A stretch of DNA of 64,000 bases from positions 3,782,001 through 3,846,000 of the forward strand of contig OZ218950.1 of assembly GCA_965112735.1 (NCBI GenBank), written 5' to 3'. Shown here one piece after another: positions 15,354 through 38,651 of this stretch (positions are counted from its first letter, which is position 1; each line of letters opens with the position of its first letter). The position numbers and the translations under genes were made by a program. The notes under the pieces are model-generated. The model searched no databases. It was given only the letters and a program-made list of their open reading frames with translations, and was not told the origin of the DNA. The stretch is from Phaeosaccion multiseriatum (Eukaryota; Protista; Ochrophyta, other classes).

Positions 15354-15456
15354 AGACCTGGGAATGCTCGAGTGGTCAAAGAGGTTGGACTTAAGTTTTC
15401 CAAACTGAGACTTCCAATAACGTAAGTTTTCGCGGGTTCGACTCCCGCTTCGTCTA
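15354..15456 (+). tRNA. tRNA-Leu(UAA) with 16-nt canonical intron (15396-15411); acceptor stem atypical, possibly a pseudogene
   Basis: D arm CTC-GAGTGGTCAAA-GAG; anticodon stem TTGGA/TCCAA with TAA at 15392-15394; variable arm AAC-GTAA-GTT; T arm GCGGG-TTCGACT-CCCGC; A73 discriminator. The acceptor stem pairs fully only if CTGG (15358-15361) is bulged out. Confidence 0.65.
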
Positions 15457-15570
15457 TGCAGTCGCGGGTTCGAAACCCCACATTGCCTTTTTTTCCCACT
15501 TTTTCTCCACTTTTTTTTTTTTTTTTTTTTTTTCCTTCCCCCTCCCTCCATCCTCCACCTCCCTCTCCCG

Positions 15571-16903: not shown

Positions 16904-19900
16904 GAGGACGAGGATGAGGAGGATGCTGCTGCGAAGGCACGAGCAGCAGCAGCAGCAGCAGCTGAAGCAGCAGCAGCATGGAGGAATCTCCTGACGGGTG
17001 GCACCAAACCCCGAGAGGTAAACTCTTCGACACATGTGCCACAGCCGCCTGCGCTCGCGACTGCAGCAACGGCCATTGACCTTCGGAGTGTGAAGGATGC
17101 AAAGGGGAGGCCGCTGTCGAAGACAGCACGGCAAGCTTTGGCGCGGAGGCTCGCCAGCGGGCCATCCCCTCCATCAACAGTGGCTGCATCAGCGGGACAG
17201 CAACCACAATGTAGACGGCGATACGATGTCGAGGGGTCGACAGAGAAGGAACACATGGAAAAGGCTGTATCTGCTGTGAAGAATGATAATGTCAGCCTTA
17301 GGAAAGCGGCGCGGCAGTATGGAATCACAAAGACTGCTCTGGAGATTAGGTGCAAGGGACGGGTTGCTTCTGTGGCTGTTGGTGGGAAGGGCAATCAAGC
17401 CTTGCCTGCCTCAACCGAAGCGGCACTGGTGAGATTTGTTGTGGACATGGCAGACAGCGGCTTTGGGGTTGACTGGAACCATGTAGGCTCCCTGGCCAGG
17501 GGTATGGCCCATGCATTGGGAGTTGCTGCATTCGTGGCATCAGGAGGCTGGCTGTAGGGCTTCAAGCGCCGCCACCCAAGTTTAGTGACGCGGCGAGCCC
17601 AGCCCCTTGCGCTCACAAATGAAGCGGGGCTGCAACGACACGACAAGGAAGGAGTATCTAGACGAGGTTCTACCTAGGTGAGTCCACGTTCGTGTACATT
17701 CCTGGAGGGCAGGATAGCGCCCCGCCCCCCCCCCCGCGGCCCCCAAAGTGACTGGAGAGGGGGGTGGGGGCAGGGACAGGACAGAGGAGAGGCGCGTGCG
17801 ACAGGGAGAGGGCATAGGGAGAGGGAGAGGGCGAGGGCGAGGAAGAGGGGGAAGGAGGGAGAGAGAGTGTGTGAGGGAGAGAGGTCGGAGGGAGACGGAA
17901 GGAGATAAGGAGATAAAGAGGGAGATGAAGATGGAGAGGGAAGAGGGCAGAGAGAGAGAAAGGCCTGTACTCTCCCCCACCAAATGACTTCATCCATCCT
18001 TTCCCATTGTCCTCCGTATCACCACGATAATAATTGTTCTCTGCCTCGCTTGCTTATCTCCCCTTCCTTCCCCTCCCCTTCTCAGTATGTTGGCAAAGCT
18101 GGCTGTGGCATCCGGGTGTGAGGTGGGGGACCTCCAACCGGTGCAGTTCTGGAACAGCGATGAGACAGGCATGAATAACCAGCGCGGTGACATGACCGTT
18201 GTTGCCCAAAAGCGGCGCAACCATGTGCCAATGACAGATCAGGAGCGATCAAGTCACGTCACTCTGGTCGGTGCTGTCGATGCCGCTGGTGGATGCATGA
18301 GCCCGTTTTTCGTCATTGCTGGAGCACGGAGGCAGGCACACATTGCCAATGCGGACGCATCACCTGGCTCTGACGTGGAAGAGTCCTTGCCCGCCACAGC
18401 AGAGATCCATTACACGGAGAACGGATACGTCACCGACGAGCTCTGGACAGAAGCAGTCGTGCCGTTCTTCATCAAGCAGAAGCGAGCCCGCATGCAAGAG
18501 CAGGCGGGGCGCGATATGCCGATTTTGCTCTTGATGGATGGCTATGGTTCGCACACGATGACCCCGGATGCTCTTCACGCTATGCGCGAAGCCGGCATCA
18601 TCTGCGCATGCATGCCCGCGCACACATCGGGGGAGTTCCAACCTCTGGAAGTCAAAGTCTTTCGCCCTTTCAAGGCCGCTCTGAGGAGCGGTCTCTCGGG
18701 CTGGCAGCGACGCTTCAACAGAGAGAACATGAGCCGGCAGGAGCTTCTTGTTCTGGCCTCCGAGGCTCAAGGGGAGAGTCACAAGTCGGAAACCATCAAG
18801 TCCGGATTCAAGGCGACAGGCTTTTACCCGCCCATGTCTTTCGCCGACTTCACCAGCGGAAGGGCCCCTGCTGAAGGGTCCATCAGCAAGGCCTTTGCTG
18901 ACGTCACACGGGCCAGTGGAGACGCCAAGGCATCGCAGTTGCAGGAGATGACAAAGGCTTTCGACGCGAACATGCTTCAGCGAGTGGGCTCTTCGTCCTT
19001 CGCAGCCGACATGGTCAAAAACCCTCTGCTGGACCTTACACCTGCGCAGGCGAGGGAGCGAGTTGCGAAGGCACAGGAGCTGCTCATGACGGACGATGTG
19101 GCAGCTGTGCAGCACCTCCTTCTCCTTCCTCATGAGCATTTACAGTCTGTGGACAGACTATCGCAGCTAAGGCGCAAAAGCGCCGTTGCGAACCGCAAGC
19201 AGGGCGCCGCCGCAGCACGTCGCTTGAACGCCATCGGGGAGTCAACGTTGACGTGTAAGGACCTTAGCACGAAAGAGAGGGTCTCTCTACTGAGAGACAA
19301 GATGGCAGAGAGGGAGGAGGCAGCGCAGGAAAAGGCAGCGGCGGAGAAGAAGAAGGACGAAGAAGGTGTGACGGAGGCTGTCCTGAGAACTCTCGGGTCC
19401 ATTCCGAAGGGGAAGAAGAGTCTCTTGAAGGGAGTCTTTGGGCTTTCATCAACGCCCAAGCCAGCACGTCTGAAGTGCGCAAGAAGGCCCCCGACAAGTC
19501 GACCAAGAAGCAAGAGCTTCTCGCCTACGTGAAGTCGTATGTCGAGACAGATGCGCGAGCAGCAAGTTGGATAGGGGCGCCAGAGCCCGCTGAGACGGCA
19601 GAAAAGGGACATGATCTGGCAGCGTCTGCAGATGAAGAGGATGAGGCAACAGAGGACGAAGGGCAAGGAGAGGGCGATGTCAGCCCAACGGCAGCGTATG
19701 AAGAGGGGGCAGAGGAGGCCGCAGCGACATCCCCATCCCCCAGGGGGGGAAGGGGGGGGGGGGTGAGCGCTGGTGAGCGAGAGGCCCTGCACACACGCGT
19801 TGCAGACGTGGAGAGGACGGAGGGAGATGTGACGGGGGTGGGGAGTGGACGAGGGGCCGAGAGCGTCAGGAGCAAAGAGGGAGGCGAAGACAGTCGGTCG

Positions 19901-20083
19901 GCGCTGGAGGCGATGGCTGCAGGAGGAGGAGGGAACAGGCGTACCGGTGGACGAAGGAGAGGCCAAACAATCAGACGAAGGAGATAGAGGGCAAGAGGAG
20001 AACGACGACGTGGCACTAGTCTCGGGTGCCAAGTCTCCGGCGGGCAGAGCGCCGAAGCGCCCCAGGAGGGAGGGGAAGAAGAG

Positions 20084-20891
20084 TCCGCCCCTGACATGCT
20101 TCTGAGGGAGGCCAGCCCAGAAGCAGGAAGCAGGCCGGCTGGCGCAGGCCAGAAGCAGGAAGCAAGGGAGGGAGGGAGGGAGGGAGGGAGGGAGGGAGGG
20201 AGGGAGGGAGGGAGGGAGGGAGGGAGGGAGGGAGGGAGGGAGGGAGGGAGGGAGGGAGGAAGGGAGGAAGGAAGATGGGAGGGACGGAAGGAAGGAGGGA
20301 GGGAGGGAGGGAAGGACGGAAGGAAGGAGGGAGGGAGGGAGGGAAGGACGGAAGGAAGGAGGGAGGGAGGGAAGGACGGAAGCAAGGGAGGGAGGGAGGG
20401 AGGGAAGGAGGGAAGGAGGGAGGGAGGGAGGGAGGGAGGGAGGGAGGGAGGGAGGGAGGGAGGGAGGGAGGGAGGGAGGGAGGGAGGGAGGGAGGGAGGG
20501 AGGGAGGGAGGGAGGGAGGGAGGGAGGGAGGGAGGGAGGGAGGGAGGGAGGGAAGGAGGGAGGGAGGGAGGGAAGGACGGAAGCAAGGGAGGGAGGGAGG
20601 GAGGGAGGGAAGGACGGAAGCAAGGGAGGGAGGGAGGGAGGGAGGGAGGGAAGGACGGAAGCAAGGGAGGGAGGGAGGGAGGGAGGGAGGGAGGGAGGCA
20701 GGGAGGGAGGCAGGGAGGGAGGGAGGGAGGGAGGCAGGAAGGGAGGGAGTCGACCCTGGACAAGATTATCTGATTACAGGTCGGCCCCTGACATGCTTCT
20801 GAGAGAGGCCAGCCCAGAAGCAGGAAGCAGGCCGGCTGGCGCCGGCCAGAAGCAGGAAGCAGGGTCGCTTCAGAAGCATGTCAGGGGCCGA
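20084..20891. mobile_element. Composite MITE-like element B with 22-bp TIRs and 6-bp TSD GAAGAG, inserted in the transposase 3' end
   Basis: Left end TCCGCCCCTGACATGCTTCTGA (20084), right end TCAGAAGCATGTCAGGGGCCGA (20870-20891). GAAGAG at 20078-20083 and 20892-20897. Contains a (GGGA)n tract, a truncated end of element A (20750-20777) and a second copy of its own left end (20781). Confidence 0.82.
20165..20749. repeat. (GGGA)n / GGAA microsatellite
   Basis: About 580 bp of near-pure GGGA repeats, directly visible. Confidence 0.98.
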
Positions 20892-21110: not shown

Positions 21111-22111
21111 TACTGGTAATACATTGTCTCCCTTCTAATCCACCACAGCCAAAGACGGGCCATAGATGTGCTATTTGATCAAACTGTGGGCATCGCTCAG
21201 GAAAATGAAGAGGCCTGTACAATCTGTTCATCTGTGGGGGTGAAAAGGGCCTTAGCTACACAATAACTTATCCCAAGACCTTTAGGCCTTCTACACGGTG
21301 GCTTGGATAAGGCTTGTATTAGGCTTATATTGCTGTCACCATCCATATCATAGCTATGGCTTCGCCACAAGCGTGGCCTGTCTGGTGCCGACTTGCGGTG
21401 TTCTACGCCCATACAGTAGCCCCACCACAATGAGAGCAAAGCAGCCTCAACCGTTCGTCTCCATCTCCTGCCTTGCAATGCACCTTCTCGCCACAACCAC
21501 ACCCCTACTCAGTTAGTTCCTCATCTCGGCCCCCCTGTGCCTGACCGTGCCGACTCGCACGCGCTCTCCATCAATCACCACGCCACCTCGCTCATTCACG
21601 GAGTGGACGGCCGCACCCAGCCAGACACCACAGGTGCCTCGTACACTCTTACCTTGTCCATGGTTGGTGAGAAGAACAACTTGAGCGAAGGGCAGGTGCA
21701 GCAGCTCGCGCTTGTCGTTGAGGGGCGGGGAATATCTGGGTCTCCTCGGTGTACGATAACGCACTGGCGCAACGCCGCGCAGGATATGCCCCCCACAACC
21801 TCTTGCAGCGGAGCTTCCGCCATAGCGCTTGTTTGGGACAGAGAATGATAGCGAGGGGGTGGGGGAGGGAGTGTGCAAGCGAGGGATTGAGAACGGGAGC
21901 TCCCTCCCCTTCTCACCTCTCCTTCAGCACGCACGCAGTCTCTCCCCAAACGAATCGCCCACTCATTCACTCATTCCCTCTCTACCTCAAAATACAACTC
22001 TCTCACCCACCCATCACTTCGCTACTCCCTCACTCACTCCCTCCCTCGCTCACCATGTTTCTCGTCGTCCCCTTCGTCGCCCACCCTCTCTCTCTCACTC
22101 ATTCCCTGGTT
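21111..22111 (+). repeat. Left arm of long diverged inverted repeat (continues at 15800-15814, on the far side of the pogo insertion)
   Basis: Colinear reverse-complement similarity to 37524-38638, from TACTGGTAATACATTGTCTCCC to CATTCCCTGGTT; many substitutions and indels. Confidence 0.92.
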
Positions 22112-22899
22112 CCCTTACTCGCCGTCCTTTGCCTTTGCTGCCCTGCCCCTCTCTCCTGTGCCAATCTTTGCCTTGCCCGTATGAACATGGTGAGCAGAGG
22201 AGTGCACGGGACAGAATTCAGGTGGAGGTAGAAAGCTTGGTCTGTTCCATGGACGTCGAACCTGCTCGCGGGTCTGATGATGCAGAGAAGGACGTTACCC
22301 ATAGCTGCTTGGGCTTCAACAAGGGGCGAGGCATGGTGGGCATGGGGGGACATACCATCACGTAGCTTCAGAAGCCTTACCTCTCCTCCCTGACAACCTG
22401 CGGTAGCAAGCGGACGAGTAGTACACGAGCCAGCAGGAGCACCAGTAGCAGACGTCGGGAGATGAGATTCAGCTGGGGCACTGCGGTGGATTAGATCCAC
22501 CCGCCGTTGCTCCAACCGTCGTTCTGGTTTTCTAGCCATGCCAGGGAGTCGGAGCCCCGCTACTCCGTCGAACCTGCTCGCCTCTTGCTCATGGACGGGC
22601 GGAGTCGATGTCGGCCGCCGGCGTCTGTGGCCTCGGCGTGGGTTGGGCTGCAAGGACAGACGGGGGAGGAGGGGGTTCTTCGTGGGCACTTGCATATTGT
22701 CGAACACTCACCCTCTCTTTCTCTCTCCACTCTATGCTGCTCGTCTTTGCCCGTCAGCCCTTCTCGCTCCGCTCTCACTCCCCAACGATCCCTCCGTCCC
22801 TCCATCATTCGCCATGCCCATCCTATACTTCTCCCCAAACAACCCATCTCCGCTCCCTGCCCCCCCTCTCGCCCGCAGCCCATCCACTTTTCTCATCAT

Positions 22900-23525
22900 C
22901 CAGCCCAGCTTCTTCGCGTGGACCCTGAGCCTGCTCACCTCATGCTCAGGAGACGGGCAAGGGCTCTTGCGGCGTGGGTAGGCATGCAGGGGCACACGGG
23001 GGAGGGAGGAGGAGGTCAGCTTAGCACTGCATAAACATTACGCCAGGCAGGCAATGCAATGCGTCTCTACGCACTCTCTCCCACCCTCACCGTCATCCAC
23101 CAGACCTGACTGGCCCCTGTGCCCTCTTTCGCGCTTCCTGCCCCCCTCTCCCCCCATCTACGTAGCTCTGGCCCATGGCTGTACGGGCGAGGTCTAGACT
23201 CTCACTCTTTCGCTCCTTTTCTCTGCTGTCGAGCTGCTCCGGTCTAAAAGCTAAAAGAAAAAAAAAAAAAAGGGGAGAAAAACAGAAAAACTGAAAAAGA
23301 GTAACGGCAATAAAAAAACGAGAGAGGAAAATCTCTTTCCTGCTTGCTTTCATCACCATGATCGAAGACGGTTGAGTCCATAATGTCCCCGTCCCTACTG
23401 TCGCTTCCATGAACGCCACCTCCGTGCCTATGTGCCACCTGCCTCTTGCTCCGCCGCTACGGGACCTCCACTGGTTGTTGAAACGAACCTCATGTTGACG
23501 TCGCCACTGTTTGCTCTTGCCGTTG
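22900..23525 (+). repeat. Diverged direct repeat, copy 1 (copy 2 at ~35713-36235)
   Basis: Shared ordered blocks: GACCCTGAGCCT, GGAGGTCAGCTTAGCACTG.ATAAACATTACGCCAGGCAGGCA, CTGCTGTCGAGCT.CTCCGGTC, AAAAAGAGTAACGGCAA, CTGTCGCTTCCATGAACGCCACCT. Boundaries approximate. Confidence 0.85.
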
Positions 23526-23928
23526 CCGGGCGAGAGTTCCAGGCTACGTACTGGGCGAGGCCACCGGAGTCCTCGGACAGGCTGAATGATGTTGCGGAGA
23601 GGGACCGATTTTCCGCCGCCCGCCATTACTCGCTCAACAAGTATCGGCGATGGATGGTAGTGGACTCACTCAGCAAGTACGGGGATGGCGGTGAGTGGGA
23701 GAGGAGGTGGGAGAGCTCACTTATCCTCCCTGAGGGAGAGGGTTGGGGCACACGTGAGCTGGGCCATTGCCCTGGCGCAAGTCGTGCTAAGGAGAGGGGA
23801 GGAGCCATAGATGGTCGTAAACGACAACATGCACCGAGCCTCACACGCACCGTTTCTCTCTCTCCACTACACAAGGGCCCGGAGAAGCACGGAGCTTTGA
23901 TCAGCAGCAGTTATGTCCGACGGAGCAA

Positions 23929-25106
23929 GTGTCCGAGGAGGAGGAGGAGGAGGAGGAGGAGCCATTCAAATGCAAGGACGAAGCGGGGGCCGGAGAATTG
24001 ACCATCATTCTTTCGGATACAGAGGAGAGGTGGAGTCGAGCGGGGAGGACGCAGAGTCGAGCCGAGGCGATGAGGAGGAGGGGGGCAGAGCTGAGCGGAG
24101 CGAAGACGACGAGGGAGAGGCCGACGGTGTCCTAGTGCCAGCGACCCCGCGCCAGGAAGGGCACTACTGCGACTATGATCCGTTGTACGACGAAGGAGCC
24201 ACGCAGATGGCCGAGACTGATACAGGTGTATTTTGGGGGCAACATCCACTAACTCCAGGGGCAGACCCCGCGTACTCCTTTCTTCTCCGACTGAAGACGA
24301 AGAATTGGGACGTCGGTGTCAGACAGGGAGAGACGGAGCCCGGCCCTCCGGCGGGACGAAGGAGGGGCAGCGCAGGCCTCCACCTACCACCCTCAGGACC
24401 AATGTCGGAAGGGAGATGACGCCGAAGCAAGGCGAGACGCCGGGGAAGGAACGAGGTGGCGGGGGAGGAGGCGGAGGAAGCAAGCTTGGTGGGCCGAAGA
24501 GGCCTCCGTGAGGGAGAGAACATCGGTCAAGGAGGTCAAGGCCAAAGCTCCGCCGGCCAGGAAGAGGAAGAGGAGAGAGAAGCAGCAGGCAGAAAGGCAC
24601 GCAGACCAGAAGCGTAGAAAAGCATCAGAGGAGATGGACCAAACTCGGACACATGAACAACACGGCGAGCAGGAGCCCAAGCGGGCGAAAGGGAAGGAGA
24701 AGTTGGGTGGGATTGCGAGGTGTGGCGCCCCGCTGACTCTAGAGAAGGAAGGCATGACAAGCGACCGCGGGGCCGATCTGAACAAGTGCAGCCGGCATTA
24801 GCGATACGCTGGGCGGGTACTGGGATTCGTCCTTCGCTTCCGCGGTGGAGAGGAGAGCCATTTCGGATATACAAGCTTGGCTCCTTCTTCTTCGACAAGC
24901 CCGGCCCCAAGACCACGGAGAGCAAGAGGCAGCGAGGGTTGCCCGAACGGTTCCGCAGCCCTTCCCCCCTGGCTGGAGACGAGAACCGGCCGGCAAGCGC
25001 GCGCACACGCATCGGAACGCATTCTAATATCAATTGTTCTAGTCCACGCCAAGCTTGCGCCCCTACCTGTAGCACGCGAGCGGCCCCTGACAGCCACCAT
25101 GTGTAG
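23929..25106 (+). pseudogene. Frameshifted acidic/basic low-complexity ORF of unknown function
   Basis: Coding-like segments alternate between frames (EEEEPFKCKDEAGAGELTIILSDTEE; HYCDYDPLYDEG; ARKRKRREK NLS-like) with stops between them. Confidence 0.35.
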
Positions 25107-25451
25107 AGAGCAGGGACGGCTCGCTCGCGCGGTCGGTGGCGGCGGAGAGACGGCGGCATGCAAACGTAGCTGCGTCCCGCTTGCTCGCTTGGCTGTGGCG
25201 AGGCTCGTGACTTCTATAACTAATATTACTTGTTTAATTTTAAATAACTTTTCTTTTACCACTACTACTTGTACTGTGTGTTACTGCTCCTGCTGCTGCT
25301 GCTCCTGCTGCTGCTTCTCGCTCCTGCTCCTGCTGCTGCCCACACAAGGTCCTCGGAACTGACGTACATGCCTTGGCAGCGCGACCAGCAGGAGGAGGAG
25401 GAGAAGGTAGTATACTCCTCCACCGCCCTCAGGGCCGTCGCCAGCTCCTGC

Positions 25452-27462
25452 TCAGACTCCTCGGTTGTCGTGCTCGTCCTCCTTCTCACCGTCCTCGTCC
25501 CTGGCGGCGAGGATGTCTTGCAGGATCTGCTCCTCGCTGATCCGTTCCTCCTCCTCGTCGTCGTCCTCCTCCCGCTGCTGCTGCTCCTCCTTCTGCTCCT
25601 CCTTCTGCTCGTCGTCGTTGTCGCTGTAAATGTACTTTCCCGGAACGTGGTCCGGCACGTACCGGTTGGTCGGGTCGTCGACGACCTTCCGTGACAGGCG
25701 CGGCTGCGGGTTGACCGTGTTAAAGGCCTGGTGGATGAGGATCCAGTCGTGGCGAGTGGTCCAGCTGACCGACCAGACCTTGATGTTCATGGCCGTAACG
25801 CGGTCCGCGTCGTCCTTTGTGCGGTACAGGTGGGGGTACATCCTCCCCCGCTTGTTAAGCTCATTGCCGGTCACCTGCTTGACGGCATGTGGGAGCATCT
25901 CTCGGATCTGCTCGACCTCCTCCTTCACCCCCGAGTTAATTTGGAAGACGGCCCTCCACATCCTTGTCCCGTCGGGCGAGAGGTACATGAGGGCGGAGGA
26001 GCCGTCCCCTGAGCGAGGGAGGGGGGGGGGGGTGGGAAAGGGGCAAGCAAGCAATGCATGAGGCAGGCCAAGTCAATTACGTGAGGGCGCATTGCTGAGC
26101 GATGATGGGCAATCTTACTCACCATCGGAGAGGCCGATGATGAAGGAGATGATGATCTCGGCCATGAAGGGGTCCGTGAGCGGCCTCTCCGGCTCGCCAG
26201 CAAGGGTCCAGAGGAAGAGGCACCGGAGACGTGGGTAAAACTGGAACGTCTTACTGCTCCTGCACCCCGAATAGAGGTGGAGGACAGCGAGGGCCTGGTG
26301 TGGGTGCGGGCGTGCAAGCCACGAGGTTAGCTACGGAGGAGCGAGTCAAGCGAGTAGCAAAAAGAAACGCTACATACCGTGGGGTTGTGGTAGAGCATGA
26401 GCCGCGACCGGATAAAATTGCCATGCTTGTCTTTTGCCGTCTTGCTGACTTGCAGGTACGGCTTGCCGGCAAAGCCTCCGTCGAAGTGAAAGCGAAAGTA
26501 CTCCGTCGTTGGCGGCTCATCTCTGAGTCCCACGCCCACCCTGTTGTAAGAAACGATTCCATCGGCGCCCCCCATACCGTTGTTGACAGCCAACGTCTTG
26601 CGCCCCTCCTTCGACTTGAACATCTGGAGGTAGAGGTTCTTTCCCTTGGGCCCCTTTGAGCCAGGCGCTCTCCCACTGAGCAGGTAGTCGGGCCGATTGG
26701 CGACGACGAGAGCGACCTTCCCCTCCGGCGAGCATAGGAATCGCTTGTACAACCATCGAAGCAGCTTGCGGGAGGCCTGGTTTGTTGAGGGCAGGGGTGG
26801 AGGGGATCGATCGTTTGAGCGAGGGCAGTCAACCAACTAAACACGTCAACAAGCAACCGCTCACCTGCTCCAGATTGAAGTCCAGCGCCTCCTTCGGCGT
26901 ACGAATGTTAGCCTTTGGGCACTGGTCCCACAGGTTCATGACGTGTCGCGTGTCCTCGTTCCTCCAACCGTCTGGCTTGCTCGCCTGCGTCACAAAGGCT
27001 TCGAACTGCTCCCTTGTCTGCAACTGCAGTATGTCGCCCTTGAGTCGCCGCTTCTCGTCCTCGGTGTTCTGCCCCCGTGTCATTACGGTGTGCAGGTTGC
27101 AGTGGGGCAGCTTGAGCTGCGCACGCCCGGACCCTGTCTTGCTGAGGTAGTGCTCGTTGAGGTGGTTCCAGACCTCGAGCTTGTGCGGGGAGAGCAGGCC
27201 GGTCTTGCTCAAGAATTCCAAGTCTCGGAAAGAAATGGAAGACTTGTTGGGTTTGTTGGCATTCCCGGAATGGTTCTTGAACCGCAGAACTTGGTCCAAG
27301 AGTTGGGCGTGAGGGGCCTGCTTGTACTTTGCTCCCTTGGGTCCATGCGCCTCGTTCGAGAAGAGGAGGCTCGTGGCCATTATCGCGCGTAGGGTGCTTG
27401 GGGGAAAGCACTTTGCGTTGTGCACTGATTCAAGGACCTAAAGTCGAGGGACGATACAGGCA

Positions 27463-27497
<35 letters not shown>

Positions 27498-27529
27498 CAG
27501 TGAGTGAGAGAGAGAGAGAGAGAGTCAGT

Positions 27530-27575
<46 letters not shown>

Positions 27576-27579
27576 CAGT

Positions 27580-27629
<50 letters not shown>

Positions 27630-30600
27630 CAGTGTGAGTAACAGCCACGCAGAAGCAAGCAATGGCTGAGGCAGCCACTCGCATACTAGTACCAACCTCG
27701 TCTACTCTCCGGTCGTTGTGCAGTCCATTCAGCACCATGGGCCCCGTCCTCATCGTGGACGATAGCACAGGGAACCCCAAGCAGGAAATGATCTTCCCCG
27801 TCTCGCCATTGTGTCGGAGAAGCTCCCCCCACAGCGTAAAGCCCTTGAGTAGTTCGGTGGGGCCGCTGCTCTTGTCGCTGGTTCCGCGGCCGAAGTAGCG
27901 ACCCTTGGCCACAACATTCAAGTGGTCGGCGAGGAGCTGCTGTTCCGTCTCGCCGTTGGCCTTGGAGAGGATGAAGTCCCTCCCATGGTCGTCGCAGTCG
28001 TCCGGGTTTGCCCCAGGGCGCATTGCGGCCGCAAACTCGTTAAACCCGGGGTGATTCCCCGAGCAAAACTTGAAGGTCTCGGACCCAGACTCCCCGGTCG
28101 CAGGAAAGCCAGACTTGTGGGTTCGCCACAACGTCTTGGCCGCCATGTCCCCTGCCTCCTTGGTATGCAGGGTGGGGCATTTGACCACCTCCTTGCAGTC
28201 GGGGCAGGTAAACTGCACAATTCTACCGCCCTCGGGCCACACTGCCTCACCTCCCCATTCGTACCCACCAGGGGGTAGCTCATGGCACCCACAGTAGGGG
28301 GTGGTGGGGGACAGCAGGTATCCTGCCAGATAGTTGTCGCACTGAGCAGCGGGCGGGGGTTGGTCCAAAATTAGCAAAAAAAAAAAGACCGCAACAAGCT
28401 GTGTCAGCCAGCCAGCCACAAGCAAAAGCACCTACCGCTTTTTTCACATCCTTCGGCTTTGGGTTTTCCCCGCGGACACCCCAATTCTTCAGCATTTGCT
28501 TGACTTCAGCAGCCACGTCCTGGTGCACGAGCAAGGTTGGGACAGCACACAAATCAAAGTCGTGAGCAAGCAAGGCCCTGCGCGGCAGGAAGCAGCCAGC
28601 CCTTGCTTGCCTTGCTTACCACAGTGTTGACGGTGTTGCCGCTACTCCTGCTTCCTGCTCCATCAGCTTGTTGCTCCTCGTCCTGGGGGGGGGGGGGGCA
28701 GAGAACCAATCAACCCGTGAGCAATGCACGCACGTCTTCCTGCTGCATCAGCCCACGTCTTACCTCATCCTCATCGTCGCTGCTGCTGGCGATATCAACA
28801 ACTGGTGGTTCCTGTTGCTGCTCAGGACTGCGCCTGTCGCCCCCCCGGTCGGCACCCCCATCGTCGTCGCTCATCCCGGTGAGGTCAATGACTGCCCCCT
28901 CCTCCGTCTCACCGGGGCCGGCCGCAGGGGCTTGGGCCATCAACTCGTCCTCCTCCTCCTTCTCCCCGTACTCCAGCTCGGTAGCGTCCGAGTCCTCCTC
29001 AATCTCCAGTTCCGTATCGGCCACACTCTCATCGTCTTCCTCCCGGTGGCCTTCGTTGTCTCCTCCTCCTCCTCCTCCTCCTCCTCCTCCTCCTCCTCCT
29101 CCTCCTCCTCCTCCTCCTCCTCCTCCTCCTCCTCCTCCTCCTCCGCCGCCGCCGCCGCCGCCACCACCCCTCCTCCTCCTCCTCCTCCTCCGCCGCCGCC
29201 GCCAGCCCCCCGCCCCCCCCCTCCTCCTCCTGCTCCCTCCATTCGGCTCCGACTCCGCTTCTGCCCGCGACCCCTCCGTCCTCCTCCTCCTCCTGCTCCT
29301 CCTGCTCCTGCTCCTCCTCCTGCTCCTCCTGCTCCTCCTGCTGCTGCTGCTATGCCCTCCGGAGACAATGCCTGGCCGTCGCAGGCCTCATCACTCCTCT
29401 TGCTCTCTTCCACCCCTTCGTCCGCCATGGCCTCGTAGGGAGAGTTTGATGGGAAGAGGAAGGTTCCGTCAGCTCCGAGATGGACGAGCACATGGGGGGT
29501 CTCTCCATGCAGTCGGTGGGCTCGTTCTGTGGTAAACGTGCCCAGAAGCACACCATCCCGCAGCTCGTTGAGTGGTACGTCGGGTTGGCGCTTGACGACG
29601 ATGCATCTCTCACCACCCAGCGCCCTAGTCTCTTGCTCGAGCAGGAAATCGGTGCGAGGGCAGAAGCCCTGGCACTCCTCTCCTCCTCCTGCTGCTCCTG
29701 CTCCTTCCCCCGTGCCCCTCTCCATCCGTTGGCTTGGGAAGTCCAAACCCCCATCCTCGCGGAGAGTGACCATCTCAAGGGTGGCCTCTTCTCCACCAAG
29801 TTCAGTGGCCCTCTCAATGGTGAAGGTGCTGTAGAGCACCCCATCCCGATCCTCATCCTGAAGCTCGGTGCCCGTCTCGAGGACGAGGATGATGAAGACA
29901 TTCCTCCTCGCCTCCACATCCAGGAGCTGCTGGGTGCGAGGGCAGCTGCTGCTCTCACTGACGCGATACAGGACGGTGGTGGCACAGTCCACACCACCTT
30001 CCACGCTCCTCAGGAGCGCTTGCTCACCCATGTCATGCCGACACACCCTTGCATCGTCGGCCATGTACCAGTGTCCTTCGTGCTTATAGTGGGCCACAAA
30101 GTGCCCTGCACCGTCAGCTCCTTGGTGCACCAGCACGGCGGAGGCGTCCACGGACAGGCCTCTCCGCTCCATGCGTCCGGGAATGTGGATGGAGGACTCG
30201 ACATCTTTGAGGACCTGCGGGGGGGGGGGTTTCGATCCGTCGGTCTTGTTCTTGCTCCCCTTCTTCTTGCTCCCCTCCTTCTTGCTCGCCTCCTTCTTGC
30301 TCGCCTCGCGCAAGCGCTGAGAGTTTCCAAGCAAAGCATTAGGCAGAGCAAAGAGAAAAAAAAATCAAAAAAATCAACGGTTAGTATTATGTCAATGGCC
30401 TAGTCTTAAGCAACCGCTCGCGCCTTTTTTTTTTCCTTCCCTCAACGCCCTACTAACACTCGCGCACTCGCACACCCCCCAACTCTTTGCTTTGCTCTCT
30501 CTCTCTCTCTCACACACGCACACACATTCACACACACACTCTCACACCCACCACACGCACGCACACCACACGCACACACACACACACACACCACACACAA

Positions 30601-31840
30601 CACGCGCGCACTCGCACACACACACACACACATACACAGACATACAGACATACGCACCCCCCACTCTTTGCTTTGCTCTCTCTTTCACCCACACCCACAC
30701 CCACACCCACCCACACGCACACAATTCATTCACACGCGCGCACACACACACTGACACGCACACACACTCACACACATTCACACGCACACGCACACAATTC
30801 ATTCACACGCGCGCACACACACACACACTGACACGCACACACACTCACACACATTCACACGCGCGCACACGCACACCCACACATACACACACACACGCGC
30901 GCACACACACCCACACACACCCACACACTGACACACACACACACCCACACCCACACCCACCCACACGCACACAATTCATTCACACGCGCGCACACACACT
31001 GACACGCACACACACTCACACACATTCACACGCGCACACGCACACGCACACCCACACACACACACACACATTCACACGCACACACATTCACACACACATA
31101 CACACTGACACGCGCGCACACACACACACATTCACACGCACACACGTGCACTCGCACACACACGCACACGCACACACATTCACACGCACACACACATACA
31201 CAGACCCCCCCACTCTTTGCTTTGCTCTCTCTCTCTCTCTCACACACACCCACACCCACACACGCGCACTCGACACCCACCACACGCACGCACACCACAC
31301 GCACACACACACGCACACGCACGCAAACGCACACGCACACACACCCACACGCACACAATTCATTCACACGCGCGCACACACACACACACCACACGCACAC
31401 ACCCACCCACACACATTCACACGCGCGCACGCAAACACTCACCCACCCCCGCACTCACGTTAATAATGACCATGACATACTCGGGGGGGGGCTTGGACAT
31501 TTCCATATTGCTCGACAAGCCGTCCTGGACAGCGTCCTGGATAGACTCGTTCATGATGGCGTCGGCCGTAACCGTTAGGACCATGTCCTCCGCCCCACAG
31601 TGGTTCATGACAGAAGCGGCGACGTTGCCGGCGTCGTTCTGCCCCCCCCTGTGGCACATGCCCTCGTCTGCGAGCAACTTCTCCAGCTTGTCCATCTCGT
31701 GGAGGGGCAGGGGCGGGCCTTGCTTGTTGATGGCCTCGCCGAGGGCCGCAGCTGCAACCCCAAGGAGGCTTTTGCCCTTGCTCTTGACGGACTGGCACAA
31801 GGTGGGGCTGCCCCGCGTGGCGGAGGCAAACTGAATTGGG

Positions 31841-31871
<31 letters not shown>

Positions 31872-32278
31872 AGAGAGAAAAGTGAGCTCGGGAGGTTCAC
31901 TTTTTGCTTGACTCGGACCTCATCGCCCCGGCATCTACGTACCAGCTGAAGCGCAGCCGCAACATAGCATTGGTTTAGTCTATTCTCACACCCGCGGGAG
32001 GGAGGGGCGTTGTTGATATTGTTGTTCGCCCCGGTGCGGGGCGAAACGAGGCAGCGGTTTGTCGAAGCCTTATCGATAAGGCGGGGAAAGTCCTCGTCGC
32101 TGTCGAGGCTGAAGGTGGCCCCGTCGGTGGAGGAGGAAGTGGGGGGCGCGGAACGCTTCTTGTGGCGGGCATCGGTGCGCGGCACGGCCCTGCCCCGTTT
32201 GGCCACTTCAAACCAATCTCCGCCCTCCTCGGCCGCCGAAGAGGAGCCGTGCGCTGCGTTCTTTCGATTGTCGGACAT
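25452..32278 (-). CDS. Putative USP(C19)-deubiquitinase / double-LAGLIDADG endonuclease multidomain protein (~1,600 aa); exons 31919-32278, 31459-31830, 28764-30316 (one unresolved frameshift or intron), 28620-28682, 28436-28519, 27697-28341, 26865-27437, 26378-26776, 26123-26294, 25452-26008
   Basis: Cys box [34 protein letters not shown], His box [48 protein letters not shown]-like motifs [12 protein letters not shown] and [13 protein letters not shown]. All listed junctions are GT-AG and phase-compatible, except that 28764-30316 is not a multiple of three. Confidence 0.7.
27465..27628. repeat. (GA)n microsatellite, intronic
   Basis: Directly visible. Confidence 0.97.
29060..29345. repeat. 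(CCT)n / CCG / CTG trinucleotide low-complexity tract
   Basis: Directly visible; coincides with the frame discontinuity of the large gene. Confidence 0.95.
30455..31455. repeat. (CA)n-rich compound repeat filling intron 30317-31458
   Basis: CA/CACG tracts with recurring ACTCTTTGCTTTGCTCTCTCT (x3) and CACAATTCATTCACACGCGCG (x4). Confidence 0.95.
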
Positions 32279-33193
32279 TTCGATTGTCTGCTCGTCTGCT
32301 GAGGGAGGTGCGGAGAGGCCGCGGAGTTAGAGCAAGGAAGGCGCGGGGGGGGGGAAGTAGACGTAGAGGGTGGGCGACATTATTCGCTGCTGGCAATGAC
32401 GCACGCGCGAGGGTGCTCCATGGAAGCATCACGCGACGCACACGCACCTGTTGTATTTGCTTCTTGCTCTCTCTGTGGCTGTCTGTGTGTTGTGGGCTTG
32501 TTTTTGAAAAAAAAGTGAGCGGGAGATGCTCTCGGCGCTAAGTCGCCAAACCCCGGGGGGGGGGCGGGGGGGCCACTCTTCGATTGGAGAACGAATAACA
32601 TGGTTTCAGCTCGACGACGATGGTGCGAGGGGGACGAGGAGGAGCGAGCTTGCCTCTGGTGGCAACAACAAGCATGTCACAGAGAATCGACGTCGGGCTC
32701 CGGGTTCTGGGCCATAGCGCCGCCGCAGGCCAGCGGTCTGGGCTTCAGGGGGGGGGGGAGGGAGACATTATGCTGGCTTCGGGGGGGCTTGTTGCTTTCG
32801 GCCGCAGGCCGCCTCAGGCTTCTGCTGCTTATCGGGGGGGGGGGGGGGAGCCGATGCCCTGGACGATGTGCGCCCTTCTTCGCCGCCTTTGCTGCGCGGG
32901 CTTGCTTCAAAAGTGACCTTTTCCGGAGAGAATAGCAGGCTCTCGCTCGCTCAAACGACTCATGCCCCATCTACGTCAGCTCCGAGGAGCGGGCGAGGCC
33001 GGAGACCTTGTGGCTGGATTGGGAGCGGCGCCTGGCCGGCAGTAGCAAGCACCATGGACTTTGAGGAAGTAGCAGTTTTATTTTTAGTTATAGGGGAGGT
33101 TCTCCCCGGGCGAAGCCCGGGGAGAATTTATCCTCCAAGCGAGTTAACGAGCGGGAGGAGAAACCTCCCTTCTTAGGGGAGGTTCTCCCCGGT

Positions 33194-33735
33194 CAGCTTT
33201 CTCATCAGGTACACCAGGACTCGCTCTGCCCTGCTGTGCCGCCCGCACGAATGGATACTGGGGAAGAAGAAGGGGGAGGCAGGTTCTTCTCCTGTGAGGA
33301 GGAGGGAGTTCGAAGAAGGGCACCGACATTAATGGATACAGGTGGGGGGGGGGGTGGGGAAACAGCCCAAGGCAGCGGTGGATTAGCACGTCCCACCACT
33401 GTGGGGCGAGAGAAATGCCATAAACTAGGTCTTTAAAAGACTTTGCGGAAAAATGGCACGGCCGGGCATGGACCACCAGCATCAGTTCCCTCACAACTCG
33501 GCAGCAGCAGCAGCACCACCACCACAGCAGCTTCAGCTTTCTCATCAGGTACACCAGGACTCGCTCTGCCCTGCTGCGCCGCCCGCACGAATGGATACTG
33601 GGGAAGAAGAAGGGGGAGGCAGGTTCTTCTCCTGTGAGGAGGAGGGAGTTCCAAGAAGGGCACCGACATCAATGGATACAGGTGGGGGGGTTGGGGAAGC
33701 AGCCCAAGGCCGGTGGATTACCACGTCCCACCACT
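33194..33735 (+). repeat. Tandem duplication of ~205 bp (33194-33400 and 33534-33735)
   Basis: Both copies begin CAGCTTTCTCATCAGGTACACCAGGACTCGCTCTGCCCTGCTG and end CACGTCCCACCACT. Confidence 0.93.
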
Positions 33736-35712
33736 CCGCCAAAGGGCACTGCATACTGGCTGCTGCTGCTGCTGCTCTCGGCCAACAAGCGACAGGGGGG
33801 GGGGGAAGGAGAGGAGGATTAGCCCAGCCATGACACCCCACCACTCCGCCACTCTGATCCTTTACCCCGACACCGGCAAGGACGTCAGCCGCTAGGAGTA
33901 TCGCCTCAGCCACAGCCACCACCGCCAGCAGGAGGGCCTGCAGCAGCTGCTGTGCCGCCCCCACCACACGGCCACCAGCCAAGCCAACCACGACTCAGAC
34001 CCACCAGGCAGAGAGAGGCTTCCTCCCCCGGCGAGGCTGCTTTCTCAGGAATACTACGTTGCCTCCACCACGACGGCAGACGCGAGTGGCAACCAGCCAG
34101 GGAAGACGCGGAGGCAGTAGACTAGAGGGAGGGGGGATATGCACCAGCAGAGGCAGGGCGAGGCAGGGCAGAGGAGGAGGCAGAGGCAGCATTCTAGAAC
34201 GGAGGGCCGCACATGCTGCTGTGGAGAGAGCAACGGTCAGCAGGCTCAGTCCCGGTACAGCTGTATTACGGAGGACGACACGTGCTGTAGCGGTCCCGCA
34301 GAGGTCACGAGTCCGCAATAGCTCCAGTCCCACCACGACCCTGGACCACGGAGGACGGCACGTGCTGCAGCGCAGAGATCACGAGTCAGCAAGCTGCCTG
34401 AGTCCCGGTACTGCTCGAGCACGGAGGACGAGACGTGCTGTAGCGCAGCAGAGCAAAGGGTGATAGCTGCGAGCCTGCCTGGCTCGATGGTGTGGCTGGT
34501 CGGTGCTAACGACAATGTTCTTTCGGAGGAGGAGCGCGGCGTGCCAGTCCAGTGCCTGCACGCATTGCCGGCACCGTCGGGATGATGCCTCTCCAGTTCT
34601 AGCAGCAGCAAGCGGCTACAGATCATTGGTTAGCTCAGTAGCTTCAGTTCCTTATGTAAACTTACGTAAATATGTACCTATTGCCTGCGTTTGGCTGTGT
34701 ATAGGCCGCGTTGTTGGCCCTGCAGTGGCTGTCTTAAAACATAGGCTCCACAAGAAATACTACCACAGCTTGCCTGACGCAGTTACGGGAGAACCTCCCC
34801 TATCACGCTCTTCTTGTATAACTTACTGCTCAGCTCACTTCCCCCCTTGCCCGCCGCTCCCCCCGTTCGGACAGCGGCACATCGGACGGGGATAGAGTGG
34901 TTGATTGCCTTCCCCTCCTGCTCCTTCTCGTCCGCTGTGAGGGGTGTCACGCCAGCGCGCTGCCCGTGTCCAATCCATCTAAAGGCAGGCATACCATCCA
35001 TGCCAAGGTAGGTATTCTACTCTCCGTCGTCGAAGCTGAAGCCCATGGCCTGCAAGGAGGGAGTAGTCGACGCACACACGTCTCTTGTGCACAACAAGCC
35101 TCTTGGGTTTCCGCGTCGACGCCATATGTGAGGCCGGTGCCTTCCTCCTCTTTTAAAAATGGAGGGAGGTACCGGCCCCACACTACTGAGCAGCTGCGGC
35201 CCGAAGGAAGCCACCTCGGGAGGTGCGCTGCCGATCACTTCCAAAGGAGTGTCTGCAAGGTCGTTTAGCCAGGAGGGGCCCGTATCCTGTCCATCCTCTT
35301 CCAACCCTCGCCCCGATCTCAACCCCCGTATGCAGCGAGGTCGGTCCTCTGCCTTTTCGTCCTTCTCCAAGGCCTCACCCGGCACTGAGGGGTCATTCGC
35401 CCTCAATACCCCCCTTAGTCTGGAGGTCCCTACCTCCTCCGCCGCTTGACCATCTGCGGTCGCGAGGACTTGTTGTTCACCTTTCGTGACGACGGGCCAA
35501 GGATATGGAGGGTTGGGCAGGAAAGGGCTGAGCGACGGGCTTTTTGATGGCGCCAGCAGGCATGGCGGGCGCAGACTGGGATAGGGCCAGGGAACGAGGG
35601 GCGGAGGGAAGGGAGAAAGGCACAGTGGGGTCCGCTTCGCCCCGTCGAATCACTTCTTACGCCCCATGCCTCTTGTCCCAAGCAATCCCTCCTTTTTTTT
35701 TGCCTCCCCCCC

Positions 35713-36235
35713 GCCCCAGCTTCTTGGACCCTGAGCCTCTGTGGCCTTCGCGTGGGTTATGGGTTTGAGTGCTCTCGCTCCCCAACCATTCCATACTTCA
35801 GCCTGCTCACCTCATGTTTTTCCTGCGGCCCGCCCGTCGGCCTTATTTAACCCTGCGTGGGGCAGCGGGATAGGAGGTCAGCTTAGCACTGGATAAACAT
35901 TACGCCAGGCAGGCACCCTGCTCGTGGTCGCCCTCTTCCCTCTTACCTCTTGCCCAGCCATGGCTGGCTGGACGGACGAGGTCCAGACACGTTCCCTCTC
36001 TCTGCTGTCGAGCTTCTCCGGTCCGCCCTCTCCGTCCTCTCCGCCGCCCCTGCCCTCCGCCCTGCCTCTTGCCTCTTTACTTTGCGGCAAAAAGAAAGAC
36101 GACAGAAAAAAGAGTAACGGCAAAAACCCCGTTAAGAGTAAAACCTCTCCCTACCATACCACATAAAGATGTCTATATACTGTCGCTTCCATGAACGCCA
36201 CCTAAAATCCCCGTCGCCGCTGTTTGCTGTCGCCA
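35713..36235 (+). repeat. Diverged direct repeat, copy 2
   Basis: Same ordered blocks as copy 1 at 22900-23525. Confidence 0.85.
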
Positions 36236-37523
36236 AAGTTGGCAACGGCAACGGAGTAGACGGTATCGTCCAAGCCCCTCCACAGAAAGGTGTCTAAGAG
36301 CGCCTCAAGCTCATCACCATCTTTCGGCCGGGACCGCAGGGCACAACCATGAGCGAAATCTCCAGGTCTGGCTCATTCTGAGCACAGGCACACCGCAGCA
36401 CTACGGCCTTTCGGCGGGCGGGGAGCGACATCATCCTGATAGATGTCACAGACTCTCTCTTTGGGAGCGGAAAGGGGCTGATGCTTCTCACGACCCAAAG
36501 TGGAACAGGGTGGTGAGTGAATGAATGAATGGCTGAGTGAGTCATTGATTGTGTGAGTGAGGAAGAGACGAGAGACTCATCATTCCTTGCTCCGCCCATC
36601 CTCTCCCTCCCTGTAGACAGCTCGGCGCAGACGGTTTCTACGTCTCCGCTAAGCCGGCAAGCGCGCGCGCTGGGCAAGGCGCTGTGTAACCTTGGGATGG
36701 GCTTACTCAAGTGTAATCTCGATGCACAGCGCTACTTGCAAGCCTCGGTTCACGGGGCAGCGGACTTCTTGTTCGTCTTCGCCTTCGTCTTCTCTGCCTT
36801 CTTCTCCCCTGCCTGCTGCTGCTTCTGCCACTGCGACTTTGGCGGCAGCGCTCAGACTGCAGGTTAGCGACCATCCTTTTTTACCTCTGCCTTTCGTTGC
36901 CATCCCATCCCTTCCTGCCCTGCCTTCCTCACCCAAGTCTCGGGGAGGACAGAGGGACGGTGGGGGACCCACGGAAGTTGGGAATGGACCTTGAGATATC
37001 AAGTCCCTTCTCTCGTATCTGTACTACAGTATCCGTCCTCTCATTGTCTCCTCCATCTCTAGGGCCTCCATGAGGCAGGGACATGAGCACTTCGAAGATT
37101 CAAGTGAGTGTTGTGTAGTGGGTGTGTCTCATAGACGCACACACAAGACATACGCATTGGGCAAAGAGCGAGAGGCGCTTCAAAGAGAGCTCGACAACAG
37201 CTGCGGATGTAGAGGGAGGAGGGAGGAAGGGCAATTTGCATGGGAGAGCTATCCAATTGCGGTGGGGTGACATAGTGAAGGGCCCTTACTACAGCACTCG
37301 TGGCCCTGAGTCACACTTCTCTCCCCTTCTCTCACAGAACATGAAGCCGCGGGCCTCCAGAGACGACGTGTGCGCACAATGAAGCAGGTAAGAGCCCATC
37401 TGGCGAGGGGGGGTGTAGGGAGCCTTTGCTCTTGCGTTGCCTGCTTGGCCTTGCATTCAAAGGCGTTAGTGGACGCCATCAATGTCCACCCCTGGGCACC
37501 AGGTCAGTCAGTCAGGGTCTCCC

Positions 37524-38651
37524 AACCAGGGAATGAGAATGAGTGAGAAGGTGGGCGACAAAGGGGACTACAAGACAAATGGTGAGCGAGGGAGGGAGTA
37601 GCGAAGTGATGGGTGGGTGAGAGAGTTGTATTTTGCGGCAGAGAGGAAGTGAGTGAATGAGTGGGCGATTCGTTTGGGGAGAGACGGCGTGCGTGCGCGC
37701 GCGATTGTGAAGGAGAGGTGAGAACGGGAGGGAGCTCCCGTTCTCAATCCCTCGCTTGCATACTCACTCACTCACGACCGTATTCACTCACTCGCTCCGT
37801 CACTCTCACCCACTCGCTACTTCACCCACACACACTCCCTCACTCCATCCCTCTCTCCCTATGCATCAATCTCCCTCGACCTGTCTCTCCCTCCCTCCCG
37901 CTCCCCCCCTTACCCCCTCGCTGTCATTCTCTGTCCCAAACAAGCGCTATGGCGGGAGCTTCGCTTCAAGAGGCTGTGGGGGGGCATATCCTGCGCGGCG
38001 TTGCGCCAGTGCGTTATCGTACGCCGAGGAGACCCAGATATTCCCCGCCCCTCAACGACAAGCGCGAGCTGCTGCACCCGCCCTTCGCTCAAGTTGTTCT
38101 TCTCACCAGCCATCGACAAGGTAAGAGGGTAAGAGGCACTAAGAGGCACCCGTGGTGTCTGGCTGGGTGTGACCGTCCACTCCGTGAATGAGCGAGGTGG
38201 CGTGGTGATTGATGGAGAGCGCGTGCGAGTCGGCACATTCTTGGGGGGGGGGGCTGGTATGTGTGGGTGTGGCGAAGGTGCATTGCAAGGCAGGAGGCAG
38301 AGACGAACGGTTGAGGCTGCTTTGCTCTCGTTGTGGTGGGGCTACGGCGGGCGCAGGGGGGGGGGGCTTAGAACACCGCAAGCGGCACCAGACAGGCCAC
38401 GCTTGTGGCGAAGCCATACGATACGGATGGTGACAGCAATATACGCCTAATACAAGCCTTATCCAAGCCGTCTTGTATAAGTGTTATCCCAGCCATCGTG
38501 TAGAAGGCCTAAAGGTCTTGGGATAAGTCCTTATATACAGGACTTCATTTTTCTGATGCCCGCGGTTTGATCAAATAGCATATCAATGGCCCGCCTTTGA
38601 CTCTGGCGGATTGGTAGGGAGACAATGTGTTACCAGTAGTGCCATCTGCGG
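37524..38651 (-). repeat. Right arm of long diverged inverted repeat
   Basis: Reverse complement matches 21111-22111 plus 15800-15814. Confidence 0.92.

Follow-up and report, generated by a model that had tools for sequence, protein, structure and literature searches.

Contig OZ218950.1 of the alga Phaeosaccion multiseriatum (GenBank assembly GCA_965112735.1), an ochrophyte (stramenopile), was analysed over a window of 64,000 nucleotides (positions 3,782,001 to 3,846,000 of the forward strand), and all coordinates below refer to that window. Its minus strand carries, from 32278 to 25452, a gene of ten exons with two dissimilar parts. The N-terminus is in good probability a divergent domain of the USP type (peptidase C19), to judge from its sequence motifs, while a C-terminal region of ~780 residues appears to be without detectable homologue in the collections searched (exons 6, 7, and 10). 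As it stands, the locus is a gene of the USP family that carries an orphan extension without precedent. The last ~150 residues of that extension may well form a genuine single-motif LAGLIDADG-type domain, a reading toward which the sequence and a fold model incline by a little. At about even odds stands the explanation preferred here, in which the locus is a resident, lineage-restricted nuclear gene of the alga, most likely a single transcription unit, whose apparent break in reading frame falls in an indel-prone tract. Selfish homing is not supported, and no positive evidence of mobility was found.

Gene structure and the USP-type N-terminus

The ten same-strand exons were rebuilt from the reverse complement of 32400-25300. 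All nine introns are of the GT-AG type, with donors of the form GTGAGT, GTAAGN, or GTAYGT and acceptors reading YAG after C-rich tracts. Eight of them are 81-259 nt in length. Intron 2 (30317-31458, minus strand) is longer, at 1142 nt, and consists almost entirely of degenerate (CA)n/(TG)n microsatellite with higher-order repeats of ~170 nt; a CTAAC branch-point-like site lies 5' of its acceptor. Once spliced, exons 4-10 form an uninterrupted open reading frame (ORF) of 830 codons, ending in the TGA at 25454-25452, in which every intron is in phase 0 save intron 9, which is in phase 1. The proportion of G and C at third codon positions (GC3) is 0.71-0.89 across the exons, similar to the adjacent host genes, and relative synonymous codon usage correlates at 0.85 with that of the pooled neighbouring host genes, where host-versus-host comparisons range from 0.66 to 0.88. 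Given the GT-AG sites, the 830-codon ORF, and the host-like GC3 and codon usage, the exon-intron structure is real, well above chance, and compositionally native. An earlier note on this DNA had the coordinates and the count of ten exons right, and the spliced unit of phase-compatible, same-strand exons that it proposed is borne out for exons 4-10.

USP-type proteases are recognised by three conserved boxes, and all three occur in canonical order in the spliced N-terminus. Exon 1 (31943-32278, minus strand) begins with the ATG at 32278, and its 3' end encodes the Cys box (residue 99; 31946-31984) with the candidate catalytic Cys, followed by the donor G/GTACGT. The box presents the catalytic-Cys pattern N-x-x-N-x-C-Y ... 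L-Q at motif level. Exon 2 (31459-31830, minus strand; 124 codons, phase 0) encodes QNDAGN (residue 176; 31624-31641), the counterpart of the QQDA box of USPs. The His box (residue 307; 30044-30106), in exon 3, reads GHFVAHY...WYMADDARV and fits the pattern G-H-Y ... W-x-x-D-D-x-x-V with both His and Asp in place. Across 200 shuffled six-frame translations of the 64-kb window, the Cys, QxDA, and His patterns arose 0, 0.09, and 0 times per shuffle. The core so delimited is short, ~220 residues from Cys box to Asp, shows no obvious 'fingers' insert, and is interrupted by two introns, so that the domain occupies three exons.

Family and structure searches were run on single exons and on two junction peptides (58-59 aa), as contiguous translations. 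Exon 3 matched the Pfam family UCH (PF00443) at 21.7 bits (E 1.8e-4; gathering threshold 23.9), its His box aligning to profile positions 201-241. This score is a lower bound, since the domain is split over three exons and exon 3 was scored alone. In a sequence search of the PDB the same exon returned USP-type enzymes in all of the top five positions (TssM twice, USP4, USP5, and USP15; E 0.06-0.3). Searches of Pfam and the PDB gave no match for exon 2 alone or for the 58-aa peptide spanning the Cys-box junction. The 'complete USP catalytic domain' of the earlier note therefore holds for the three boxes at motif level, whereas the profile sees the His-box part only, and that below the Pfam threshold.

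Exon 3 and the C-terminal extension

Exon 3 (28764-30316, minus strand; 1553 nt) links the USP core to the extension. After the His box come two tandem modules of ~60 aa (29732-29908 and 29447-29611, minus strand) that share the pattern …RDGVL..TFT.ERA..L.GE…DG..FPS. The two are duplicates, aligning with a score of 80 against 26 +/- 4.7 in shuffles (z ~11), and neither matched a Pfam family. They are followed by a purine-only (GGA/GCA/GAG)n tract (~29350-29060), which encodes a low-complexity G/A/E/R linker, is open in all three frames, and includes runs of G9 and G6 at 29221-29206. The exon ends in an acidic stretch with two strings that fit the consensus of the SUMO-interacting motif (SIM), namely VIDLT (28878-28892) and VVDI followed by SSSDDEDE (28764-28802).

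The coding frame changes from frame 2 to frame 1 of the minus strand somewhere in the interval 29387-29060. Upstream of 29387 frame 2 alone is open and frame 1 is closed; from ~29060 there runs a coding-looking frame-1 peptide that is acidic, is coding-like for ~40 codons upstream of its own first ATG, and splices in phase into exons 4-10. A profile of GC3 by frame was uninformative across the purine-only tract. The break is most likely an indel error or an unresolved splice within one gene, as far as sequence can tell, because the two frames overlap and leave no intergenic space, frame 1 is coding-like ahead of its ATG, and the 830 codons downstream are intact. The break nonetheless leaves the fusion of the USP part to the C-terminus unproven. 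Three phase-compatible GT..AG pairs could heal it as bypass introns (29958/29371, 29613/29371, and 29613/28801). They were not adopted, since coding-looking sequence would be removed, including the duplicated module 2, and they have no pyrimidine tracts and poor acceptors. The frame-2 stop TGA (28942-28940) overlaps the first frame-1 ATG (28940) as TGATG (28938-28942, minus strand), an arrangement that would occur by chance about 1 time in 16 or, if the frame shift is real, might hint at termination-reinitiation.

Exons 4 (28620-28682; 21 codons) and 5 (28436-28519; 28 codons), on the minus strand like the rest, lead into exon 6 (27697-28341; 215 codons), which is rich in Cys and His. Its clusters, C-x16-CGCH at 28282-28341 and CPDC-x5-C-x4-H at 28165-28206, form a candidate zinc-binding module. 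The orphan exon 7 (26865-27437, minus strand; 191 codons) appears mostly helical. Exon 8 (26378-26776, minus strand; 133 codons) opens with a helix followed by LCSPEG (26720-26752), and its AlphaFold2 model, at a predicted local distance difference test score (pLDDT) of 35, consists of this one helix and eight strands. The top Foldseek matches of the model were Pur-alpha, PC4, and SSB folds; none was significant, and no LAGLIDADG structure was among them. Of the features named in the earlier note, the frame discontinuity in exon 3 and the Cys/His region of exon 6 are present, and its SIMs are found at the level of consensus strings.

On the searches made, the extension is an orphan. Exon 6 had no match among 1.84 billion cluster representatives in an exhaustive phmmer search, and none by word-index search; residues 1-125 of exon 10 likewise had no relative by word-index search. 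Metagenome contigs contained no relative of exons 7 and 10, nor did viral contigs contain one of exons 6, 7, and 10, bar a single match in IMG/VR (IMGVR_UViG_2061766007_004288, 1482-2465). This locus was dropped as a chance match because only 41 residues of exon 10 align, by way of VKQVTGNE, inside a bacterial RHS-type ORF; the ORF is 327 aa long and carries the RHS-core-like string PVKLTDPDGRW. Nothing in exons 6-10 was recognised by Pfam, PHROGs, or NCBIfam.

The LAGLIDADG-type motif arises at the last splice. Exon 9 (26123-26294, minus strand) ends in phase 1 with a hydrophobic helix (26124-26171) that supplies the first part of the motif, up to ...GLSD, and exon 10 (25452-26008, minus strand) completes it (25968-26008) and continues through an alpha/beta region and an acidic low-complexity tail to the TGA at 25452-25454. 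Intron 9 thus splits the motif itself. The product, IIGLSDGDGS (residue 640 in the protein spliced from exons 4-10), is the one match to the strict LAGLIDADG pattern in that protein; none occurs elsewhere in the six-frame translation of the window, and 0.005 are expected per shuffled 64-kb window. A hydrophobic helix of 14 residues terminates in it, and Ser and a predicted beta hairpin come next, an arrangement shared with single-motif enzymes. Both acidic residues are present, and one Asp would occupy the position of the catalytic acidic residue.

Exon 10 was also modelled from its single sequence with AlphaFold2, leaving out the motif helix. The model is of low confidence (pLDDT 49.7) and has the order E-E-H-E-H-H-E-H (E, strand; H, helix), which would fit the portion of a LAGLIDADG domain after the first helix, the core of that superfamily running alpha-beta-beta-alpha-beta-beta-alpha. 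When it was compared with the PDB by Foldseek, LAGLIDADG enzymes appeared at ranks 1, 2, 11, 19, 29, and 37, all sub-threshold; the first two are the bI3 maturase, and I-OnuI, I-AniI, I-GzeII, and I-LtrI fall within the top 50. Against BFVD, an I-AniI-like protein ranked 3 and LAGLIDADG proteins of Clandestinovirus ranked 5 and 47. A domain of this kind, having one motif, would have to dimerise. There is no support for a second half-domain: exon 8 offers a weak candidate string only, and its alignment to exons 9/10 as a possible internal duplication found no similarity. Searches of phage genomes by tblastn gave nothing relevant to LAGLIDADG, and a 58-aa N-terminus of I-CreI, used as bait against the phages in the same way and as a lead only, had no match. 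A phmmer search of the PDB with the 59-aa peptide across the exon 9/10 junction returned designed 'Cake' and PQQ propeller repeats only; these were rejected as repeat-inflated because they comprise nine repeated matches of ~6 bits to PDGT..W.

The 'double LAGLIDADG' endonuclease of the earlier note is accordingly reduced to one strict motif, with exon 8 unlike exons 9/10 and other folds heading its Foldseek list. Its broader claim of a LAGLIDADG-like C-terminus keeps the motif and the sub-threshold fold matches but finds no recognition by profile or sequence. The comparison with Pfam that it had proposed, made exon by exon, gave the partial, sub-threshold UCH match (21.7 bits) and none of LAGLIDADG_1, LAGLIDADG_2, or LAGLIDADG_3.

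Genomic setting and mobility

Traces of mobility or homing were sought in the window. No second copy of the gene is present within the 64 kb, and self-BLAST of the window found no target-gene fragments, gene-fragment duplications, or pseudogene cluster of the WHO type. A search of the whole window against Rfam gave no family above threshold, and so none that would provide a self-splicing intron context, and no intein or Hint domain was matched by Pfam in the window ORFs or the exons. The genes flanking CDC73 in Ascophyllum and Chrysoparadoxa contained no homologue; both are class-level relatives, and at that distance the result carries little weight. The gene contains nine spliceosomal introns, one of them within the LAGLIDADG-type motif, and this points to long nuclear residence. 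The idea that the gene is a homing-type element that cuts a target and strips ubiquitin near the break was not upheld, there being no extra copies or target fragments in the window, native codon usage, nine introns, and no target-site duplication.

Two repeats of ~1 kb surround the gene at a distance, the left at 21111-22111 and the right, inverted relative to it, at 37524-38638. Identity between the two is 81-86%, rising to 96% in a core of 161 nt. The outer end of the left copy begins TACTGGTAAT, and the repeat ends read TACTGGTAAY.... No target-site duplication was found at the pair, whose flanks are TTACTCT and GTGCCAT. Between them lie 15.4 kb (22112-37523) in which the USP gene is the sole recognisable gene; ten further ORFs there had no Pfam matches. 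The 'repeat-bounded accessory island' suggested earlier is therefore right about the inverted pair, but the pair has no target-site duplication and the gene's codon usage is native. Just outside the left repeat, on the plus strand, is an ORF of 514 codons for a DDE_1 (pogo/Tigger-type) transposase (17988-19529; Pfam E 2.3e-11), with GC3 of 0.66 and codon usage near that of the host genes (r = 0.72).

The remaining neighbouring ORFs are ordinary eukaryotic genes, encoding a GOGAT-type oxidoreductase, peptidase C69, CDC73, RNA 3'-phosphate cyclase, a protein kinase, a Duc1-domain protein, and an ankyrin-repeat protein. CDC73 (40282-41784, minus strand) is a single, intron-less ORF of 501 codons from its ATG, and its product shares 42-47% identity with the CDC73 proteins of Chrysoparadoxa and of the brown algae Ascophyllum and Ectocarpus, which places the window in an ochrophyte. 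The match to RNA 3'-phosphate cyclase lies within a stop-free frame of 516 codons (47395-48942, plus strand), and that to peptidase C69 within one of 640 codons (13207-15126, plus strand). The adjacent host genes are intron-poor over long stretches, in contrast to the nine introns that the USP gene holds in 6.8 kb. ARAGORN called a tRNA-Gly(TCC) gene of 93 nt, large enough to include an intron, at 15365-15457 (plus strand), with the peptidase C69 gene on one side and the DDE_1 ORF on the other.

Further repeats occur in the window. A 585-bp (AGGG)n microsatellite (20165-20749) sits between two direct repeats of 85 bp (20083-20167 and 20780-20864; 95% identity), and comparable G/A-rich arrays occur at 660-1015, 1830-2240, and 2666-2760. 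A segment of ~200 bp is duplicated 340 bp apart (33193-33400 and 33533-33735), with 95% identity overall and 98% over the best 158-nt core. Its location ~1 kb upstream of the ATG of the USP gene may make it a promoter-region duplication.

Explanations and known systems

In the explanation preferred here, the resident gene would encode a nuclear isopeptidase with a USP-type N-terminus. The C-terminal region would act as a nucleic-acid-directed module comprising the Cys/His zinc-binding part, a beta-rich part, and the final alpha/beta domain of ~150 residues. Together with this module the SIMs might bring the protease to SUMO-marked chromatin or DNA, where it would remove ubiquitin or another ubiquitin-like modifier. 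The LAGLIDADG-like domain, as a dimer, could supply sequence-specific DNA binding or cleavage, and would be domesticated rather than homing. A stronger version is rather improbable: a true fusion of USP, SIM linker, zinc module, and catalytically competent LAGLIDADG domain, that is, a site-specific DNA-cutting or DNA-binding deubiquitinase, either domesticated or a new nuclear selfish element, in an architecture undescribed in any organism. Within the library of papers searched, none names LAGLIDADG together with deubiquitinase.

Several results weigh against the preferred explanation. The assembled sequence contains no one continuous protein, and a shift of the one-base type is required within 29387-29060. 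The UCH match falls short of the Pfam gathering threshold, the Cys-box and QxDA parts were recognised only by eye or by regular expression, and the SIMs are short consensus strings, seen at motif level. No LAGLIDADG family was found by Pfam or PHROGs in exons 8, 9, and 10, by Pfam in the 59-aa junction peptide, or by NCBIfam in the exons, and phmmer against the PDB returned no LAGLIDADG chain for the exons or for that peptide. Local alignment of the spliced protein to the 58-aa I-CreI N-terminus found the motif only (p ~0.056 by shuffles). The LAGLIDADG matches of exon 10 in Foldseek all lie at E 0.04-0.6 with TM scores of 0.24-0.32, come from a model of pLDDT 49.7, and are not significant. 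The C-terminal region, being without homologues, offers no conservation evidence of function.

Those negative sequence and profile tests also speak for the possibility that the LAGLIDADG resemblance is due to chance, a serious contender if not quite the expected outcome, in which the C-terminus would be assembled from domains that are new or have escaped recognition, such as a zinc module and a single-stranded-nucleic-acid-binding beta domain, attached or adjacent to the USP. When many windows are scanned, a motif with an expectation of 0.005 per window will surface occasionally; the best sub-threshold folds of exon 8 are those of Pur-alpha, PC4, and SSB; and the stretch after the motif also resembles a string of PQQ-type propeller blades, at ~6 bits per repeat. 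However, the enrichment of LAGLIDADG structures recurs in two Foldseek libraries and is independent of the motif, because the exon 10 model excludes the motif helix, and the motif falls exactly at the end of a hydrophobic helix of 14 residues with Ser and a predicted hairpin behind it. That the two parts are not truly fused is doubtful, but deserves more weight than either mobile-element account. On one strand a USP gene would then abut or overlap an orphan gene unrelated to it, the second starting at the ATG at 28940 or by reinitiation at TGATG, or the locus would be a recent frame-shifted pseudogene. The frame break is there in the assembled sequence, the frame-2 stop overlaps the in-frame ATG of the downstream frame, and the sole phase-compatible bypass introns cut coding-looking sequence and have poor acceptors. 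Nor is co-occurrence of the two halves elsewhere demonstrable, homologues having been sought only for exons 6, 7, and 10 of the C-terminus, which returned none. Yet the frame-1 peptide is acidic, high in GC3, and coding-like for ~40 codons before its first ATG; the overlap of the reading frames leaves no intergenic space for a second promoter; and the 830 downstream codons run over seven exons without stop or frame defect, so that any inactivation must be very recent. The tract around the break is all purines, has runs of G9 and G6, and is open in all three frames; indel errors are common in such sequence.

An active selfish element of the homing type, in which a target in the genome is cut by the LAGLIDADG nuclease and ubiquitin or SUMO signalling at the break is manipulated by the USP and SIMs fused to it, is very unlikely. 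It would account for a motif with both acidic residues and the weak fold hints, for the sporadic occurrence expected of such an element (no relatives of the C-terminal exons searched, and none beside CDC73 in two relatives), and for a gene placed between diverged inverted repeats near a pogo-like DDE_1 ORF in a repeat-rich stretch. It must contend with the absence from the 64 kb of a second copy, target-gene fragments, or a pseudogene cluster, with repeats that are only 81-86% identical and have no target-site duplication, with native codon usage and nine spliceosomal introns, one inside the motif, and with surroundings that show no group I/II intron, intein, or Hint; the nuclease fold is putative and lacks its second half. 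Still less credible is the account that makes the gene a passenger, or a transposase that escaped recognition, in a DNA transposon of ~17.5 kb with the 1-kb repeats (21.1-22.1 and 37.5-38.6 kb) as its terminal inverted repeats. Cysteine proteases of other clans do occur as transposon passengers, and the repeats bracket 15.4 kb in which this gene alone is recognisable. But the arms are 14-19% diverged and show no target-site duplication, no transposase, integrase, or RNase-H-like family is found in any exon and none inside the repeats, codon usage is native, and the repeats could be no more than two old copies of a dispersed element.

Should both the fusion and the LAGLIDADG fold prove true, the protein would be the first in which a ubiquitin or ubiquitin-like protease is coupled to a LAGLIDADG module, and the gene a rare nuclear LAGLIDADG gene with spliceosomal introns outside fungi and plants. 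Nature would then offer an enzyme that could edit ubiquitin or SUMO marks locally, at a break or a defined DNA sequence, with a bearing on the domestication of homing endonucleases and on repair-pathway choice. If not, there remains a well-spliced, natively coded region of ~780 residues without a relative among ~1.8 billion representatives, a lineage-specific invention attached to, or beside, a divergent minimal USP.

Cysteine proteases such as Ulp1 or OTU domains are carried by some DNA transposons, and the present locus is like these in having a cysteine protease of the ubiquitin/ubiquitin-like system in a repeat-flanked segment near a DDE_1 ORF. It differs in that the protease is of the USP clan, not Ulp1 or OTU, that no transposase was found in the unit of the USP gene and no target-site duplication is present, and that the DDE_1 ORF lies outside the inverted repeats.

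Among LAGLIDADG proteins, I-CreI is a single-motif homing endonuclease, whereas the bI3 and I-AniI maturases are non-homing descendants. WhiA is a further non-homing descendant (as cited in PMC7282813). As in enzymes of the I-CreI type, the string I-I-G-L-S-D-G-D-G-S closes a hydrophobic helix and agrees with the motif at its G, hydrophobic, D, D, and G positions; a beta hairpin followed by helix, strand, and helix is predicted after it. Structures of the bI3 maturase, I-AniI, and I-OnuI type are the recurrent top sub-threshold fold matches of the exon 10 model. Unlike LAGLIDADG enzymes, the region here has no profile-level similarity, one motif, and no recognisable second half; the domain closes a protein more than 1,300 residues long, and the gene is nuclear with spliceosomal introns rather than part of a group I/II intron or an intein.

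The nearest known LAGLIDADG genes that are nuclear and free-standing are HO and WHO, in which no USP domain is known. HO and WHO of budding yeasts are nuclear, free-standing, intein-derived endonucleases with LAGLIDADG and zinc-finger parts (PMC7282813; bioRxiv 10.64898/2026.08.13.744650). Their intein-like region (Hint + LAGLIDADG) is followed by a C-terminal CxxC zinc finger, and WHO genes are clustered with fragments of their target gene FBA1 (PMC7282813). The present gene shares with them a nuclear, stand-alone status and the pairing of a Cys-rich region that may bind zinc with a motif of the LAGLIDADG type. The order is reversed here, however, with the Cys/His cluster of exon 6 ~350 residues upstream of the motif of exons 9/10; no Hint or intein signature was detected, and the window holds no target-gene fragments comparable to those of FBA1.

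With known USPs the N-terminus has in common the Cys, QxDA, and His boxes in canonical order, with Cys, His, and Asp. It differs from them in a profile score under the Pfam threshold and on one box only, and the C-terminal extension of ~780 residues has no counterpart in any. In its short core it resembles TssM, a fingerless bacterial effector of the USP type (PMC10719079), which is also among the best PDB matches of the His-box region. The SIM-like strings beside the USP-type domain recall a USP fold that acts in the SUMO system, as exemplified by the SUMO-specific USP known as USPL1 (PMC8983731).

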